From contig CAJFCJ010000002.1 in assembly GCA_904063045.1 (NCBI GenBank), positions 1,054,001 through 1,118,000 of the forward strand: a stretch of DNA of 64,000 bases. The letters are read 5' to 3'. Position 1 is the stretch's first letter; every line of letters begins with the position of its first letter. The position numbers were made by a program, and so were the translations under genes. Under the pieces are notes generated by a model. That model was given only the letters and a program-made list of their open reading frames with translations, had not been told where the DNA came from and made no database searches. Source of the stretch: Dimorphilus gyrociliatus (lineage: Eukaryota > Animalia > Annelida). Shown piece after piece: positions 19,156 through 29,432 of this stretch.

Positions 19156-21476
19156 TCATACAGTCACCCTTTGTTTGTCATGGGATCGATGATGAAAAAC
19201 AAATGAAATTGAATTTTTCCAAGCACTTTTTAATAAAGTATCTGTTACGCCTTTCTTGTCCGCGCAATGGTACCACTGTGACAAATCACTATTGCAGTCA
19301 CTTCCTTCAGGTGGTGGCTTTACTTGTATTTTATTAATACACCTAGTACATTTAAATTTATCGTGAGTATCACTAAGAGTATTCTCATCTAATCTGAATA
19401 GATGCTTAAGTTCTTCAACACTGAAATGTCTTGTAACATCTTCCTCTTTATCAACAACGCAAGAACTCAGGGCTTTTTTGTGCGCTTGTCTCTGAAGTAT
19501 TTTCTCTTCAATCGTTCCAGTGGCAATTAGACGATATATGAAGCATTCTTTCTTCTGTCCGTCACGCCAAATTCTCGCCATAGCTTGGTCATCATTTGCT
19601 GGATTCCAATCGGGATCAAACATAACTAATCTGTTAGCACCAATTAAATTTAAGCCACATCCTCCTGCTTTACTACTTAACATGAATATAAATTCTGGAT
19701 TGGCTGGATTGTTAAATTTGTCAACAATTTTAGCTCTCTTTTTTATTGACATTGTCCCATCTAGCCTAACATATAGATATTTCCTTTGCTTGCATAAACG
19801 TTCGAATAAATCCAGAGTCTGAGTATAGTTAGACACAAGAACTATCTTGTCAGAAGTTTCAGCTTTCATCATGGCTAACAAGTAGTCAAGGACAAGTAGT
19901 TTTCCCGATAAAACTGGTTGAACCAATTTTGTGTCATGATTGCCAAATAATTCCATTGTATTTTCAAAACCCTCACTGCCCTCTAAGCATTTTTCATATA
20001 TTAGATCTGGGTGATTGCATAATTTCTTCAGAGTTGTAATTGCTGAGAGAGATGAAACAGAAACTTTACCCTTTTTAATCTCACATTGAGCAGCTTTGGA
20101 GGAAACGAATTTTTTATACAGTGCTGTTTGCAGTGGTGTTAATTTGCAACACACAACTTGTTCAATTTTTACCGGTAAATATCTTGTCAGTAGTGCTTGT
20201 GTTCGTCTTATAATGCATTTACTGACCAATCCAGAGAGCTCTCTCAATTTTTCGTCTCCTTTCTTTCGATCATTTTCACTTGCGTCCGCATCACGACCGC
20301 GAAGTATTGGGGTTTCGAAAGCTTTCCTAAACTGAATGGCAGAACCTAATAAACCTTTATTTACGAAATTAAGGAGTGAAAAATATTCGAGGAGATCATT
20401 CTGAATGGGCGTCCCAGAGAGTAGGACTCTTCCTTTCGCTTGCAACTGTTCCAGGGCAGAGTAAGTTTGGTTTTCACAATTTTTCAAACGATGGCCTTCA
20501 TCACAAATAACTAAGCCAATTTCTGATTTATGCATAACTTCAGCATGAAGTCGAAAAGTTTCGTATGATATTATTAGTATTGGAGTCGAAGTTCTTGCCG
20601 AAGTCATGAAATTTTCTAGTTTATCATCAATTTCAGCCTTAGACCCTGAATCTATTGCAAGAGCCAAGACTTTGCTACCTAGCCATTTATTTATTTCATT
20701 ATACCAATTTTTTACTAAACTACTAGGCGCTACAACCATTGCTTTAGTAATTGACGGCCGTCCTTCCGGGCCTTGCTTCAGTAGTGTCCACATTAGAGTA
20801 ATACATTGAAGAGTTTTTCCAAGACCCATTTCATCGGCCATAATACAACCAAAGTAATTTTCTATTTGAATTCCAGTCACACAGTCATACATAAATTTCA
20901 CCCCTTCACGTTGATGAGGTCTTAAGACTTTCGTTAGATTAGGATCGACCACAATATGTACCAACTGATCGTTTGGTTGAGTTTTCATTTGATCGTGAGC
21001 AGATATTTCCGGGGGTGAATATAAGACAAGTGCACCCTCTTCATCAGGGTCGTATAAGGCACCTCGAGCACCTAACCGTCTTAGACCCAAAACTTTATTG
21101 GTTCTGGAACTTTGATAATTTGGCAGAGATAATTTGAAAGGCCGGCTGAGAATGTTTTCAATGGAATTTTCCTAAAAACAAAAGCTACATCACTTGTTAG
21201 TACAAAAAAGTATCTTACATGATCAGTATTTTCGACATTGTCAACAGTCGATTTCAGAGGTAGCCTATAAGGAGACAAAAAGTTCCGGTTATCATCGGAT
21301 GACAAATTTTCTTTCATTTTTTTTTTTGATCTCTTTCTTGGGTCCCAATCTTCATCAGTTGCATCTATCTGCTTTCTTTTATCTCCTGTAACTTTGCTAG
21401 GAGCCAAACTCCTCCTCTATAGTTTTTAGTATGAGCGATAATGAAAAGAATAAAAAAATATAAAAGAAATTACCAT
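19156..21476 (-). CDS. RAD54L: RAD54-like SWI2/SNF2 DNA translocase
   Basis: M|RRSLAPS N-terminus, [29 protein letters not shown] and [13 protein letters not shown] motifs. ATG at 21474-21476 is followed directly by an intron. Confidence 0.95.
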
Positions 21477-21777
21477 TTTTTTAAAAATTATGGGATTATT
21501 CGTCAAATTCAAAGAGGGATCTAAATTTTCATATTTCAATACCAAAAACAAAAGGGTGATATGGCTGAAGAAAGATTTTTAAAATAAGTAAGTTCAGGAT
21601 AGAACAATATCGTTCGTTCAACAACGGCGGACCGTTCTATGAATTTTTTTTCGTATTTAATTAAACTAATATAATTTCGTTCGTTCAAAGATCCTTATGC
21701 CACATTAAATACAAAATCTGAAATAATGCTCCACTTCTCTTTCGTATACGAAAATAACCAAAACTCAAACATCAATA

Positions 21778-23298
21778 ATGGATGATTCAATGGCGGGAAC
21801 AGAAAATAAAGTAAAGAGAAAATTAAGATTTTATAGTACTGAAAATGAAAAAGTTACAGAAAATATTGCCGATTCTTCGCAGGCAACATTTAGATATCTA
21901 ATTATTTTTAATGGAATAATTATTCTTTTTTCTACACTAACCTTAATAGCTGATCATTCTACAGGTAAATAATACCTTGCTTCAAAATTATAGTCTATAA
22001 CAATTGCATATGACAGATATTATTGTCAGCATTGAATACGGGATTGAAGGCCATTTTATTTGGGCTTCCTTGACGTTAACTTTTTTACTCGTTCCATCTG
22101 TTTTGGTACAAATATACTCGGCAAGATGCTACTCTACAACAAATGAAAATTCAAAAACAGATTTAGTTTGCATCCTCAGTCATGTATTTCAAATACAACC
22201 TTATGAAAGATACTGGCGGTTAGGAGTAGCCTTTGCTAAAGTTAAACAAGAAGAAGATTTAAACAATTGTATCCGACGACAAAGTGATCTCAGCAAAATC
22301 CGTCTTATTTCAGCATGTATTGGATCAGGTCCCCAATTGACTCTACAATTATTCATTATTTTACAGACAAATGATTGGACAAGGGTTACAGTCTGTTCAG
22401 CGATTTTTAGCGGTGTCTCTCTTATTTGGTCAATAGGCTCTCAATGGCACTGCTTCAGACAAGAAAATAGCACTGATTACTCTTTTCTCCTCAGAAGAAT
22501 AATATTTGTTATGGTTTATCAGACTGGATTTTTAACTTCAAGAATTCTTGCAATTATTTGTTTAGCTTTTATGCTTAAAGCATATGTATTCGCTGTTTTA
22601 GCTATACATGGTCTTTTTGTATTTTTTTGGATTTTGTTACAGAAAAAAGATATCTGCCCGATAAATGTTAAAGAAGTTTTTGATAAATTTGTAATAAGTT
22701 TGATTCATATGTTTATATTTTTCAACACGAAAGAAGGCTCAACTAGATTAAGAATGGTTGTATATTATGCTATAACGGGAGCTGAAAATTTTTTATTTGC
22801 CATCATCTGGTTCTTATACGATTCTCCAACACCATTGAATATCGCTCTTCTCTCTTTAACATTATCAACATTCTGTATTGGTAAGCATTTATGATTTGGC
22901 ATGGAAACATCTTAAGAGTCACTATCATTTTTACAGGTGTTCTGCTTTTGCTATTATTTTATCGATTTTGTCATCCTGGAGGACCTATTCGTTGCTCGTA
23001 CTCTTCCAGAAAAACTCTTACTATTCCACCCACTCCCGCAACGCCTATGCCGAACTCTTTTCAGCATTACAGTATTGACACATCGGCTTGTCTAGATTAC
23101 GCTGAACCCGAAACAAAGTTTAACTTAACTGAAATGATAATGAATGGAACAACAAGTTGTGAATCAAATAGTTTCATTTTTGGAAACGGCTGGAACGAAC
23201 AGGAGTGTGGCCGAATGATATCTTTGACTCCTAAAGAAACTTCAGGCGATCGGCTGGAAGATAGCTACTTAGGTCAACGTAAAGTTGAACATCAATAA
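21778..23298 (+). CDS. XKR: XK-related multipass membrane protein (putative phospholipid scramblase), 3 exons
   Basis: Multiple TM segments, motifs GSGPQLTLQL, SRILAI, IFFNTKEGSTRLR..YY and YRFCHP. Head-to-head with RAD54L. Confidence 0.85.
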
Positions 23299-23440
23299 TC
23301 TAGTTTATTAAACTAGTGTCATATTGTTTGAAGCACGAAATTTTATTCATTTTGAAAACCTATCATTTTTATTACGACCAAGAAATCTTCTGCTTTTCCA
23401 ACAACTGTAGCGAATAGATTCAAACTTTCATGTCAAAAAA

Positions 23441-26295
23441 TTATTGTGACAAAGAGCAATTTACCTTTGTAATAATACCGGCCCCGATGGTTTCTCCTTG
23501 GGATCGAAGAGTAAATCGACCAAGCTCAGATACTTCTTTAAATTCTTCCATTGGGGCACTACGGCTTATTTCAATTAAAACATCAGCTGTTTGTTGAGCA
23601 ACTAGAATTCTTGGCTTCTTCTTGATAGTTTCACCAGAAGACTGATTGACAATTTTATACAGCTTCTTAATGATGGCGGGTTCACACATTTCTTGAATAT
23701 GTAACTCAACCTTTAAAAATTAGTACGTTTTTAGTTTTGAAATAATATTTATAAAAATTTCTTACTGTAAAACCATTTGTAATGGGAACTTTTGTTGCAA
23801 ATACAACTATTCTTCCTTCAAAACAATTAGTACACTTCATAGGCCTCTCTGGAGACGAAAATGCATTTCCTTTATAAACTGCATTCAATTCTATTCCAGA
23901 CAAGGCTAAAATAACTAAATCGCCAGCAAATGCACAGGGTACGGCTTTATCGTTCAGTTGAATCTCCTTAACTACAGCAACGTCGTTGTTGGGTAAAAGT
24001 AATAATCGATTGTGGAGCTGAACACCTCCTGTGAAAATTCTTCCTTCTATCATAACGTTACTTCCAGAACCTTTAAAAGCATCTGATACAGTCATTCTGA
24101 ATGGTGCATCTATCTTTCGCTGGGGCGACGCAAAGCTATCAATTTGTTCAAGTAACGTTGGACCCTTATACCAAGACGCACATTCATCATTGTATCTTTC
24201 TGCTAAGTTATACCCATGATAACCAGAGACTGGTATAAAGCTTAAAGATTTTTCTTTTATGCCTGCTTTTGTGAAAAATGATTTCATTGTCTGCTGAATG
24301 TAGTTGAATCTCTCCTCGTTCCAATTTACCATATCCATTTTGTTTATGGCAACGATAATTTGTTGCACACCTATGGAACGTAAAAGCATACCATGCTCTC
24401 GAGTTTGTCCACTTCTTTCATAGCCGGCCTCAAATTCTCCAGGAGAAGCATCGACGGCCATAATGGCAGAGTCTGCTTGAGCAGTACCACTGATCATTTT
24501 GGGAATAAAATCTTTATGGCCAGGGGCATCTAAGATATTTACTATTTTATGATCTGTTTCAAAGGAAGCTCGAGCAATATCCATTGTTACACCTCTTTCT
24601 CTTTCATCTTCCAGCTCGTCTAATACGAAAGCGAGCCAAAAACTTTGCCGATTGGCCTTTGTCGCCTCCTGTTTTATTTTATGTAGCTGTTTGCTACTTA
24701 TTTGGCCCAGCTTTACAAGTAAATGTCCCATTAGCGTTGATTTTCCTGCGTCAACATGGCCACAAACGATAATATTGAGGGCCTCTTTCCCTTTCGAGCA
24801 CAATTTTCGTTTTTCATATTCAGCTTGTAAATCAAGTTTCTCTTTTTCTTGAGATTTACTATACATTTTATAGAAGCAAAGACTTAACCGTATAAACTAG
24901 TTATTAAATTAACAAATTACCGAGAAATTAATTTATTTGGTGTGCTCAAATGAGTCTTTTTCGGGAGAGGATTGGGAGAAGCTGACTCTCCAGAGGCTAA
25001 AGACATTTGTGATAATTTTTTTCTATTTTCGTCAGTAGATGAGACTGTTGCAACATTTCCTTTATCGTTTGGGCCTCTCTGTTTCTTTCCAGGGGGACGA
25101 TTGCTATTCGGTTTATTTTCCTTTTTTTTCTCTGTATTTGTCCGGTAAGCTGAAACATTGTTTTTATTTCGAAAAGCTGCCTTTTGATGTCGATGAACTA
25201 TATCATCCGGAGAGGGGTCAAGAAAATCAAAAGGCTGAATGCTATTGTGTAAAGGATGTGTATATAGGCGACTTTTATGATGACTGAATTTCGGAGCACC
25301 AAAAGCTTTTTCATGTGTTAATGCTACAGCAAAACTAGATGGTTCAGGGCAGCTCTGGGAAGTAATTTTATCTAAAGGATTAAGGACTGGACTCTTATCT
25401 ATTTTTTTAAAAAATAATGACTGAGATTGTTCTCGAGTATCAACAGAGAGAGATTGTTTTGATTCATTAATAGTACTTTCTGATTGGGACATTTGATTTT
25501 GTTTACAAGCTAGATTGGCAAGGGTTTTTCTTTTCACTTGTTGATTTTGTTGGACGGCTAAAGACGATAAAGAAAACTTTGCACGTTCTTACCTTACAAA
25601 CGCCATTTAAGCATCGGATATGAAAGGGGCCAGACGTTAGTATATAAATATGATTATAATTTATAAAATTCACCTGGTTTTTTTTCAGCATGGACGGCAC
25701 TTTGAGGTTCCAGTGCATTAGCCTTTTTGGAGAATAGTGAATTTAAAGCAGCGTTTGAATCGAAATTGTGTTCTATAGCAAGACTTATTAATTCTTCTCG
25801 GCTTTTGGAATTTTTTACCACAGCTTTCATATCTTCTAAACAAACGAACAGCGAATCTAGTTTTATAACAAATATGAAAATTAACTGATTGGCATGATAA
25901 GTCAAATTCGAACTTCTTACGTCGTTCAGCTGCAGTGAGATTAGATGGTATTGACCCTTCATTCATATCGGCCTCAAAAACACCCATTTCGTCTTCTTCG
26001 TTGTTTTCTTCTATTGATTCTTTCAGAAAAGTTCCAAAATTATGATTGGTTGAGCGACTTGGAGGGTATGTATATTTTTCCATCGTTCCAGGTGATACAC
26101 AAGAATCTTCAAAAGAAACTCCATAATCGTTATCCTCATCGAAACTACCAATACATTCTACAGATAACAAAACCAAAAACTTAAACGTGTTAAGATATTA
26201 AATTTTATTCAATTATCGCTCAATAAAAAAGTAAACATTTAAAATATCTCACCGTCAGATAATCGCATGTTTCGAACATTTCTATGCCGAGACAT
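23441..26295 (-). CDS. HBS1L: HBS1-like translational GTPase with Ski7-type motifs
   Basis: N-terminus MSRHRNVR, G-domain GHVDAGKST, ERERGVT, DAPGHKDF and NKMD, C-terminal GRFTLRSQGETIGAG. Internal exon carries PSSFAVAL and PFDFLDPSPDDIV. Confidence 0.93.
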
Positions 26296-26755
26296 ACTGT
26301 AAAACACAGATGAAGCCTTAAGCTTTCTCTTGATATTTATAAATATATTCAGAAATGAAACTGACAGTTAACTACACGACGTACAGTCTTATTCAGAAAT
26401 GTTATTTTTGCGGAGTAAACTGGTAGTAATTTTTTTTTATAAAGTAAAATCAATGAAACTATGCTGAAATAAACAACGCAATATGTGCAACATCAGATAT
26501 GCAATGAATAATGTATTTATCAATGCCATATTAAAATAGTACATACAGATATAAAAATACACGATCAAACAAACTGTTTAAATAGGATGTTATTTATGCC
26601 TTACAATATACCTTTCGAGACAGGTTTTAAGAAATGTACATCAAATTAACATTATTAAATCTATTAGTCAAACGAAAGGATGTTAAAAAAGATTTGACAG
26701 TTTGCAATGTAACGTGTGACAATAGGCCAACGGCGCGGTGTGGTTACGCCATCTT

Positions 26756-27382
26756 TTACTCAATTGTATACGCGAGAAAAATATAGTCTTCTGAAGAAGA
26801 GGGAATTATAGAACAGCCAGGCGCCACAGGCCCGAATCCCAAGAACATAAAAATACGGACGAGCAGAGCTCGATCTTTTCGATTCTTCTTCAAACTGACG
26901 ATCACGTGGCTCACTCCCAGTTCGTCTTCGGCGTACTAGATTGAAAATCAATTGTTAAGGATATCTGATTTGTTGTAAAATTTAGCTGTATAGTGTCATA
27001 TTACCTCTAACATCTTAACAAAGCTCTCCTTTGAACCATCTGGTAAAACTCCTGGCGAAACGTGCACGAATAATTTTCCTTCAAACATGACAGCCTGCCA
27101 TTCAACATTTCGACCATCCACTAGCTGAACATTGAATAGGATATTTGATGGTGGAAGAAATTGCGGAGTGCTTAGAAGACCCTCGCGTACAGGGGGCGCT
27201 CTCTCAACCCCCACACCGTTGCCCTCTGTCGTTTTGCATGCGGCGTGGGGAGCATCAGGAACACCACAGAGGCCCTGAACCGAGATGTATGACTTGGTAG
27301 TGTTGGGCCATACTGTTTGAGAAATTTCAATAATTTAAGGATCATTTAATTTAATTCAGTTCTTGACTTACTTCGTGTCCAT
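26756..27382 (-). CDS. OAZ1: Ornithine decarboxylase antizyme (ORF1 + ORF2 via +1 ribosomal frameshift), about 165 aa
   Basis: ORF1 MDTN|MAQHYQVIHLGSGPLWCS ends TCC-TGA. The +1 frame continues DAPHAAC...LPDGSKESFVKMLE|YAEDELGVSHVIVSLKKNRKDRALLVRIFMFLGF. Introns at 27313-27371 and 26936-27004. Confidence 0.95.
27189..27260 (-). promoter_or_regulatory. Antizyme frameshift site UCC-UGA with predicted 3' RNA pseudoknot
   Basis: Stem 1 is CCCCACGCCG with CGGUGUGGGG (10 bp, one G-U). Stem 2 is ACAGAGGGC with GCCCCCUGU (8 of 9 paired). Confidence 0.8.
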
Positions 27383-27390
27383 TTTACTGC

Positions 27391-27615
27391 TGACGTCACA
27401 TATCGACGGCATATTGTTTTCTTTCGCTTTTTCTTTCGGGCCGAAATTTTCCGTATTTGTTATTGCCTTTATGGCTTTTATCATACCTAATAACAAATAA
27501 ACAAGTCATTGAAGACGATATCATATAAATATGAAAAATCAGTAACTTACCAACAATAAAAATTAGCGATCAGTTTGAGAACTAGAGAATATTCTAGGTC
27601 GACGGGCTGACGTCA
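27391..27615. promoter_or_regulatory. Bidirectional OAZ/STK11 promoter with two full CRE palindromes (TGACGTCA at 27391-27398 and 27608-27615)
   Basis: Two perfect 8-bp CRE palindromes lie in the roughly 490-bp divergent intergenic region. Confidence 0.5.
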
Positions 27616-27870
27616 CGAAATCTGTAATCACATGACACCTTGAAACGTATTTCTTATTTTCGTATATTTTAGAAAATTCTTTTAGACATGTTTTGAAATA
27701 ATTTTTTATGACAAAATATTGAAAGAAAAAAATTCAAATTTAATTTTAGAATTCCGAATATAAGATAATCAAAATGGCTGAGCATCCAAGAGCAGAAACA
27801 TTTGTTTTGTGACATGGAGGAATCATGAAAAAGAAATTATTTATTTATTACAAATTTGAACGTTACAATA

Positions 27871-29432
27871 ATGGACAAAGAAAATGATACTGAACGTCCT
27901 ATTAATGTACATTTGTCAAGTACAGAAGATGAGCAATTATTACACACATCAGGAGATATTGGAAACTATTTTCAGGATGAAGGGGGATCTCTAAATTTTT
28001 TTACAAGAGTTGATTCAGCCGAAATAATATACCATGAAAGGCCGAAAAAAGCGAAAATAATTGGAAATTACCTAATAGGCCATGTTCTCGGTGAGGGATC
28101 TTATGGCAAAGTCAAGGAGTGCTTGGACACGGAATCTCTTTCAAGAAGAGCTGTGAAAATACTTAAGCAAAGACAGTTGAAGAGAATCCCGAATGGGGTT
28201 TCAAATGTAAAAAGGTTTTTATGATAAGCTTGACAAGTCATTTTGTTCAATGTTTTTATTCAACAGAGAAATAATTTTATTGAAAAAGTTACACAACAAA
28301 CATGTTATCAAATTATTCGACGTATTTGTCAGTGAAGAGAAACAAAAGATTTATTTGTTTATGGAATATTGCGTTGGAAGCCTTCAGTCGATGCTTGACA
28401 ACGTTGAATCCAAATGCTTTCCGCTATGGCAAGCTCATTTGTAAGTTACTAATCGAGTTTCTATTACTAGCATAATTTACACGTCAAACGACAGATATTT
28501 TGTTCAGCTGATTGATGGGGTAGATTATCTTCATAGTAGAGGGATTGTTCATAAGGATATAAAGCCACCCAATTTATTATTGAGCCTCGATGAAACTTTA
28601 AAAATAACAGATCTCGGCGTTGCTGAGGTATTTGAATTTACTAACCAATTTATCATATTAATAAATTTAATTTTCTGCTTTCAAGGAATTGGATATGTAT
28701 TCAAAGGTTGATTGCTGTTCTCTTTCCCAAGGATCTCCTGCATTCCAAGCGCCTGAAATAGCTGACGGTGCTGAATATTTTTCGGCTTTCAAGGCTGACG
28801 TGTGGTCTTGTGGTGTCACTCTGTAAGTCTGTCTTTAATATAGTATCACTTTTTTTTGTTTCATTCCAATGCATCATAGGTTCAATATTACAACCGGTAA
28901 ATTACCTTTTATGGCGGACAATATTTACAAATTATTTGAATGCATTGTTAAGTGCGAATATACCATTCCTGAATTGGACAGTCCTCATTGTACCGACTGT
29001 ATTAAAGGTATGTTAAAGAAAGATTCGACAGAGAGATTTTCCATTAAAGACATTAAAAGTCACGAGTAAGTTGTTATTTTAAATTTCATATGCCAAGATT
29101 TCATTCATCGAATTTTCTAGATGGTACAGACGAAAATTAGGACGAAGCAAAGAGTATGTACCACCACCACCATATAATAAGGATGATATGTTGAGGCGTA
29201 TGAGCGTAATTCCAAACTTGGAGATACTTTATATGGAAGAATCAGCTGAGTCTGAAACTGAAGTTGAATTACAACATGTGGAGGATTATAGTAGGTAGTA
29301 GAACAACTTTTGTTACCATTAATTTATATTCTCTTACTTGTAGAAAAAGCATCTCGTCAACACTCAAATGATAATAAAAAGAAAGGTTCCAGTGTTAAAA
29401 ATTTCTCTGGTAGTTTCTGCAAATTATCATAA
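27871..29432 (+). CDS. STK11: Serine/threonine kinase 11 (LKB1)
   Basis: [56 protein letters not shown] and a C-terminal CaaX-like CKLS*. Start codon is approximate. Confidence 0.93.

Follow-up and report, generated by a model that had tools for sequence, protein, structure and literature searches.

A gene of the HBS1L/SKI7 type lies on the minus strand of a 64,000-nucleotide stretch of the genome of the annelid Dimorphilus gyrociliatus (contig CAJFCJ010000002.1, positions 1,054,001 to 1,118,000; hereafter the window), and raises the question of how one animal gene supplies both Hbs1 and SKI7, which acts as an adaptor between the cytoplasmic exosome and the SKI helicase complex. Ascomycetes use alternative 3' splice sites, the proximal site giving Ski7 and the distal site Hbs1 (Marshall et al. 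2013, PMC3597508; PMC7491326). In plants the choice is made by a cassette exon and the GTPase is retained (Arabidopsis At5g10630; Brunkard & Baker 2018, PMC6143672), and vertebrates use an alternative terminal exon, with loss of the GTPase and a specific region of about 490 residues (Kalisiak 2017, PMC5389692; Kogel 2024, PMC11540850). SKI7-like sequences have been reported from several invertebrate phyla, annelids not among them, in work that left the evolution of metazoan gene structures open (Brunkard & Baker 2018, PMC6143672). An earlier reading of the letters of the window (the original prediction) held that this gene uses the fungal-style switch and makes up to three isoforms. The junctions of two of these, Hbs1 and a Ski7 form that keeps the GTPase, were found in RNA, and the third, a Ski7 form lacking the GTPase, was without RNA support. 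The gene probably operates a two-isoform HBS1/SKI7 switch in which one donor is joined to either of two in-frame acceptors, the long form being a SKI7 adaptor and the short form Hbs1.

The RNA evidence came from the three sequencing runs that matched the gene, a coral metatranscriptome (X1), a marine metatranscriptome (X2) and a single-organism run from 2017 (X3), and consists of contigs rather than reads, with depths expressed as k-mer depth. X3 contained 78% of the sampled words and was fully spliced, and thus behaves as a same-strain cDNA library. The donor that closes exon 3 (CCAG|GT; last exon base 25674, first intron base 25673) was real in the RNA joints, as had been read from the sequence. 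It was joined to the proximal acceptor, exon start 25587, in X1, X2 and X3 (three runs from three studies) and to the distal acceptor, exon start 25149, in one X3 contig with a depth of 143.1 and a shorter side of 27 nt, in which 524 nt with GT..AG ends were skipped. The contig of the proximal path had a depth of 365.2 in X3; by contig depth, which is a rough guide only, the distal path represents about 28% of the total, somewhere between a quarter and a third of the molecules. The layout of the X3 contigs, with one contig ending at 25674, one running from 25587 to 25123, one starting from 25152 and a short junction contig between them, is the bubble expected of two isoforms. Both 25149 and a proximal site are therefore used, the distal one in X3 only. 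The X1 contigs of HBS1L were nearly identical to the window and those of X2 differed by about 5%, mostly by third-position transitions, which indicates that the worm or close strains were present in these environmental RNA samples.

The alternative segment (25150..25587, minus strand, as are all features of the gene described below) is kept with the proximal acceptor and lost within the 524-nt intron with the distal one. The original prediction had put the proximal acceptor at 25557, 30 nt too far downstream, and had counted 408 nt and 136 extra codons; since 30 more bases are coding, the segment measures 438 nt or 146 codons. The acceptor in use reads ..GGTAAG|AACGTG and has a poor pyrimidine tract. 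The tract at 25557 is better, yet no joint to 25557 was reported in the contigs of X1, X2 or X3, and this candidate is contradicted by the RNA joints and the comparative data. The last 10 bases of intron 3 (25597-25588) are GTAAGGTAAG, two tandem motifs resembling 5' splice sites that end in the AG of the proximal acceptor, and may act as a U1-binding decoy or as a regulator of acceptor choice. Further upstream, a CTAAC branch-like site is present inside intron 3 at 25640-25636.

The distal acceptor was correctly anticipated as a TTTCAG with exon start 25149, in phase with the donor, and it too has a poor polypyrimidine tract. On this strand TTTCAG occurs about 0.47 times per kb and about 0.1 in-frame copies would be expected within exon 4, so that such a copy is only mildly unlikely by chance and it is the RNA joint, not the motif, that proves the distal site real. 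The site falls where vertebrate SKI7 proteins end (..AFTRE followed by a stop, with shared AF(T/S)R residues), and the end of the worm segment thus matches the end of the vertebrate protein. The splice choice accordingly removes precisely the SKI7-specific module.

The motifs on which the original prediction was based, TLANLACKQ, PSSFAVAL and PFDFLDPSPDDIVHRHQKAAF, are all encoded within one open frame in the segment. Three blocks were delimited in it. Block A (25487..25585) contains the repeats FSLSSLAVQQNQ (25576-25541) and KTLANLACKQNQ (25528-25493) and is a candidate SKI3-docking element; judged by eye on a published alignment, they resemble the repeats (SLxDL..HQ and SLSQLA..H) of SKI7 sequences from vertebrates and Lingula in the matching region, where the human SKI3-docking helix also lies, and we infer from this likeness that they may be the counterpart of the SKI3-docking helix. 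Block B (25307..25345) carries the SKI7-like motif EPSSFAVALTHEK, apparently corresponding to the RxxxFxxxL helix with which human SKI7 occupies the RRP43-MTR3 cleft. Block C (25151..25243) consists of the Patch-4-like stretch SIQPFDFLDPSPDDIV and the helix that follows it, HRHQKAAFRNKNNVS, whose human counterparts are the CSL4 patch and the helix contacting SKI2 RecA1.

Homology searches, run exon by exon, pointed to the same protein. The motif-carrying exon 4 was without a Pfam family match, and phmmer comparison with 177,635 distinct solved sequences gave a single match, human HBS1L isoform 2 (SKI7; chain 9g8m_E of the exosome-ribosome supercomplex, E = 0.13), over the PFDF..SPDDIV..QK.AF stretch. 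A profile built from the window, a related species and the C-terminus of P0003 found 9g8m_E at E = 3e-7 over the PSxFAxxL helix and the Patch-4 region, followed by yeast Ski7 chains with non-significant E-values; the inclusion of P0003, a vertebrate-type SKI7 that was itself retrieved with the window's own sequence, biases this profile. In the alignment obtained, EPSSFAVAL stands against human ARPSAFASTL, and a Patch-4-like motif, IQPFDFLDPSPDDIVHR, which is kept in the relative, is aligned to 9g8m_E as well. The published metazoan consensus is A+PShFAahL and IaPF[D/R]F[K/D][S/T]aSPDDIV+A (Brunkard & Baker 2018, PMC6143672), and the motifs of the segment agree with it except that the basic residue is a glutamate. 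An exhaustive protein search with the 145-residue module returned two true relatives, P0001 (the exon of the related species) and P0003 (a fish-type terminal SKI7 exon); the region evolves too fast for wider sequence comparison. A third match, P0002, was rejected as a low-complexity false match.

When the segment is compared with human SKI7 (Kogel 2024, PMC11540850), a counterpart can be proposed for each contact in that structure. Human residues 555-572, which occupy the RRP43-MTR3 cleft, correspond to EPSSFAVALTHEK; residues 582-593, at the RRP43/RRP45 loop, probably to KSRLYTHP; residues 602-616, on CSL4, to SIQPFDFLDPSPDD; and residues 617-632, the helix reaching SKI2 RecA1, to IVHRHQKAAFRNKNNVS. 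The helix docking on SKI3 (residues 451-464) would have its counterpart in block A.

The segment was compared with a 66-kb genomic contig (L010) of one related species, where it is exactly 438 nt long, open and free of indels. P0001, a 191-residue open reading frame of that species, was 61% identical to the module, and the identity was unevenly distributed. Block A (residues 1-33) was 94% identical at the amino-acid level with 12 synonymous changes, and its first 10 codons, the 30 nt that the original prediction had assigned to the intron, were 100% identical with 4 synonymous changes. The motif part (residues 76-145) was 77% identical with 24 synonymous changes, so that blocks A, B and C range from 77 to 94% identity, and EPSSFAVAL was unchanged. 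From this comparison of sequences, the alternative segment appears to be under purifying selection. The spacer between block A and the exosome motifs (residues 34-75, 25488-25363) was 31% identical and showed no indel over its 42 codons, which suggests that its length, but not its sequence, is constrained.

The splice architecture is conserved as well. DNA alignment with the relative showed that the donor GTGAATTTTAT, the CTAAC..TCTGGCC branch region, the proximal acceptor TTTGTAAGGTAAG|A and the distal acceptor AATGTTTCAG|CTTA are all kept, and the donor and the first 11 bases of the intron are identical. Intron 3 was 67% identical between the two species, whereas intron 2 reached 44% and intron 4 only 42%. 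Within intron 3, the last 16 nt were 94% identical and the 17 nt upstream of them 24%. Introns at regulated splice sites typically show such heightened conservation, although the figures here come from one pair of species.

The coding part of the gene extends over 23372..26295 (ATG at 26295-26293, stop at 23374-23372) and comprises seven exons separated by six introns, all with GT..AG ends when contigs of the sequencing runs were aligned to 23300-26400. Exon 1 (26295-26253), intron 1 (26252-26158), exon 2 (26157-25921) and intron 2 (25920-25857) lead to exon 3 (25856-25674), which probably encodes the last part of the HBS1-type N-terminal domain common to both isoforms and closes at the single donor CCAG|GTGAAT. 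In its proximal-acceptor form intron 3 is 86 nt long (25673-25588; joint 25587<->25674), and exon 4 runs from 25587 or 25149 to 24921. Its common 3' part (24921..25149), directly after the distal acceptor TGTTTCAG|CTTA, encodes a basic linker that is present in both isoforms. Intron 4 (24920-24859, 62 nt, phase 2, GTAATT donor) is spliced in X3 and precedes exon 5 (24858-23766), which encodes the translational GTPase domain and domain 2. Intron 5 (23765-23711), exon 6 (23710-23465), intron 6 (23464-23405) and exon 7 (23404-23372) complete the gene; introns 1, 2, 5 and 6 were each seen as joints in spliced contigs. By an exon-by-exon phase walk, both isoforms are in frame, with lengths of 833 aa for the proximal and 687 aa for the distal acceptor.

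The open reading frames and the sequence of 25800-24700 comprise an HBS1-type N-terminus, an open frame of 206+ residues with the motifs and a 386-residue GTPase frame. Pfam GTP_EFTU was found in exon 5 at 1e-50 and GTP-eEF1A_C in the exon after it; exon 3 matched HBS1_N weakly (15.6 bits, cut-off 26.4). The N-terminal MSRHRNVR and the stretch YG.S.ED..C.SPGT agree with vertebrate and Lingula sequences, and the G motifs GHVDAGKS, DAPGH and NKMD are intact in exon 5. The best solved-structure match of exon 5 was mammalian Hbs1l at 1e-117, with eEF1A and eRF3 at about 1e-80, and its top matches in the protein collection were HBS1-like proteins with 51-52% identity, the full-length vertebrate HBS1L among them being mostly 680-690 aa long. 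Searched by word index, the open frame of exon 5 (396 residues) retrieved the exon of the relative and HBS1L of other taxa only, and no protein of the species itself. The nearest GTPase paralogue in the worm's own genome was 39% identical, both the motif segment and the HBS1L gene are single-copy there, and genes for EXOSC1 and Ski2_N are present in the same genome. By sequence comparison, the minus-strand gene at 26295-23372 is identified as the single HBS1L orthologue of this compact annelid genome.

Several points weigh against a two-isoform switch of this kind. For the distal junction there is one contig from one run, whose shorter side measures 27 nt; the low-depth metatranscriptomes X1 and X2 show the proximal junction only; contig depth indicates the isoform ratio only roughly; and the linkage of the alternative segment to the GTPase exons was deduced from contigs that overlap rather than from one read. 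In both species a glutamate replaces the arginine (R559) of the human RxxxFxxxL motif, no match at E <= 10 among the solved chains was obtained with block A by itself, and the comparison is limited to one related species. In human SKI7 the RxxxFxxxL motif was tested as a triple R/F/L mutant (Kalisiak 2017, PMC5389692). Alternatively, a constitutive long form might be the one functional protein and do both jobs, with the 25674>25149 joint being splicing noise (exitron-like) or an artefact of the library or the assembly. The single short contig from a single run and the poor polypyrimidine tract of the distal acceptor would fit such an origin, and the acceptor bases of the relative could be kept merely as codons of conserved residues. 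A k-mer depth of 143 against 365 is, however, far above noise, the skipped stretch has canonical GT..AG ends and its removal preserves the frame, and the 687-aa product has the size of canonical HBS1L. The excised sequence stops at exactly the point where the Ski7-specific module ends, and intron 3 is unusually conserved, which together make noise or artefact an improbable explanation.

Two other accounts concern the long form, and both are very unlikely. One is a GTPase-less Ski7 of the vertebrate style, made by retention of intron 4 or by polyadenylation at AATAAA 24937-24932. Intron 4 is a real 62-nt intron, as the original prediction had it, and reading through it does give an immediate stop (CGG TAA), in the relative too, with a retained product of 377 aa, while the AATAAA lies 12 nt upstream of the intron-4 donor. 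The stop is nevertheless trivial, since any phase-2 GTAA donor gives NNG TAA and four of the six donors of this gene begin with GTAA, and the retention that had been proposed is absent from the X3 contigs: by bin arithmetic, X3 contig depth is zero inside 24859-24920, as it is inside 25588-25673, and no X3 contig retains an intron. The AATAAA was rejected as a poly(A) signal of a short Ski7, as it reads AACAAA in the relative and no contig ends there. A terminal exon of the vertebrate type, with a stop and polyadenylation right after the Patch-4 helix, was not found either; the frame continues into the linker and the GTPase. The other account takes the segment as a lineage-specific disordered insert of some other role whose likeness to Ski7 is coincidental. 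It could draw on the weak single-sequence match to human SKI7 (E = 0.13), the two true relatives that were all the exhaustive search found and the missing motif arginine, but the order of two distinct motifs is that of human and fish SKI7 and their spacing is similar, and they lie in the same gene, equally placed with respect to the N-terminal domain. Nothing else in the segment is as well conserved as these motifs, and human SKI7 was the sole match among the 177,635 solved sequences, so that chance resemblance has little to recommend it.

Under the two-isoform switch, the 5' splice site 25674|25673 would be joined to either of the two in-frame 3' splice sites. Choice of the proximal site (25587) would keep the 146-codon segment, predicted to be disordered, and give an 833-aa protein composed of a putative HBS1 N-terminal domain, the SKI7 module, the linker and an intact GTPase, and choice of the distal site (25149) would remove the segment and give a 687-aa canonical Hbs1. 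Binding partners and a division of labour between the isoforms may be proposed from homology with human SKI7: SKI3 would be the docking site of block A, the RRP43-MTR3 cleft would receive EPSSFAVAL, PFDFLDPSPDDIV would bind CSL4 and the helix after PFDFLDPSPDDIV would touch SKI2. The long form would thereby connect the cytoplasmic exosome to the SKI complex, whereas the short form would act with Pelota in ribosome rescue; the choice between them may itself be regulated. A fuller version of this scheme is tentative and rather doubtful as a whole: that the annelid keeps an ascomycete-style switch with an unusually compact module that contains candidate SKI3, RRP43/MTR3, CSL4 and SKI2 elements and is joined to an intact GTPase, that a GTPase-bearing SKI7 is ancestral in animals, and that the fully conserved GTAAGGTAAG sets the isoform ratio.

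The gene order around HBS1L is shared with the relative. A block consisting of an LKB1/STK11-like kinase, HBS1L, an XK-related gene and a RAD54-like helicase is common to 19156-29100 of the window and 1-8576 of L010, and neighbouring genes in this block are only 2-3 kb apart. HBS1L and the XK-related gene (open reading frame end at about 23298) are convergent, with a gap of less than 100 nt between them, and a 3.1-kb X3 contig that begins in HBS1L exon 4 continues beyond 23300 for about 1.4 kb, entering the XK-related gene.

The worm gene shares features with each of the known systems. As in ascomycetes (e.g., Lachancea kluyveri), one gene with one donor and two in-frame acceptors gives a longer, Ski7-type product from the proximal site, and the GTPase is present in both forms. 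The worm gene differs in being an animal gene with motifs of metazoan type (PSxFAxxL, PFDFxxPSPDDIV), and the likeness described is in the splice layout. With human HBS1LV3/SKI7 it shares the order of elements (SLxxL-type helices, RRP43-binding helix, CSL4 patch, C-terminal helix) and, probably, an HBS1 N-terminal domain in common with HBS1L. Unlike that of vertebrates, the worm module is 146 residues long, continues in frame into an intact GTPase and depends on the choice of 3' splice site, and the arginine is replaced by glutamate. In plant HBS1/SKI7, a Ski7-type isoform likewise has a C-terminal GTPase and splicing toggles an exosome-binding motif, whereas in the worm both motifs lie in a single alternative segment. 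A similar arrangement is that of another lophotrochozoan, Lingula anatina, where a RefSeq model (XP_013414569.1) has Ski7 motifs fused to the GTPase (Brunkard & Baker 2018, Data Sheet 3, PMC6143672). This predicted protein contains SLSQLA..H repeats, the Patch-4-like motif and the full GTPase; it differs from the worm protein in its length (1111 aa) and its many repeats, and is a gene model only.

The worm locus is a transcript-supported further case of known SKI7/HBS1 splicing, not a new mechanism. Its arrangement is less unusual than the original prediction implied, since the Lingula model already fuses the motifs to the GTPase and variable SKI7/HBS1 splice patterns are found in the literature; Marshall et al. 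reportedly surveyed such patterns across eukaryotes, animals included, in PNAS in 2018. The general principle being established, the gain is incremental, a data point on how the switch evolved. Being very compact and sharply delimited, the module would serve well as a ready-made minimal construct in structural and binding studies. As an invertebrate example of a Ski7 form that carries the GTPase and is chosen by the 3' splice site, the gene connects the fungal and plant arrangements to animals. If the fuller scheme given above is true, a GTPase-bearing SKI7 would be ancestral in animals and the loss of the GTPase in vertebrates would be derived.

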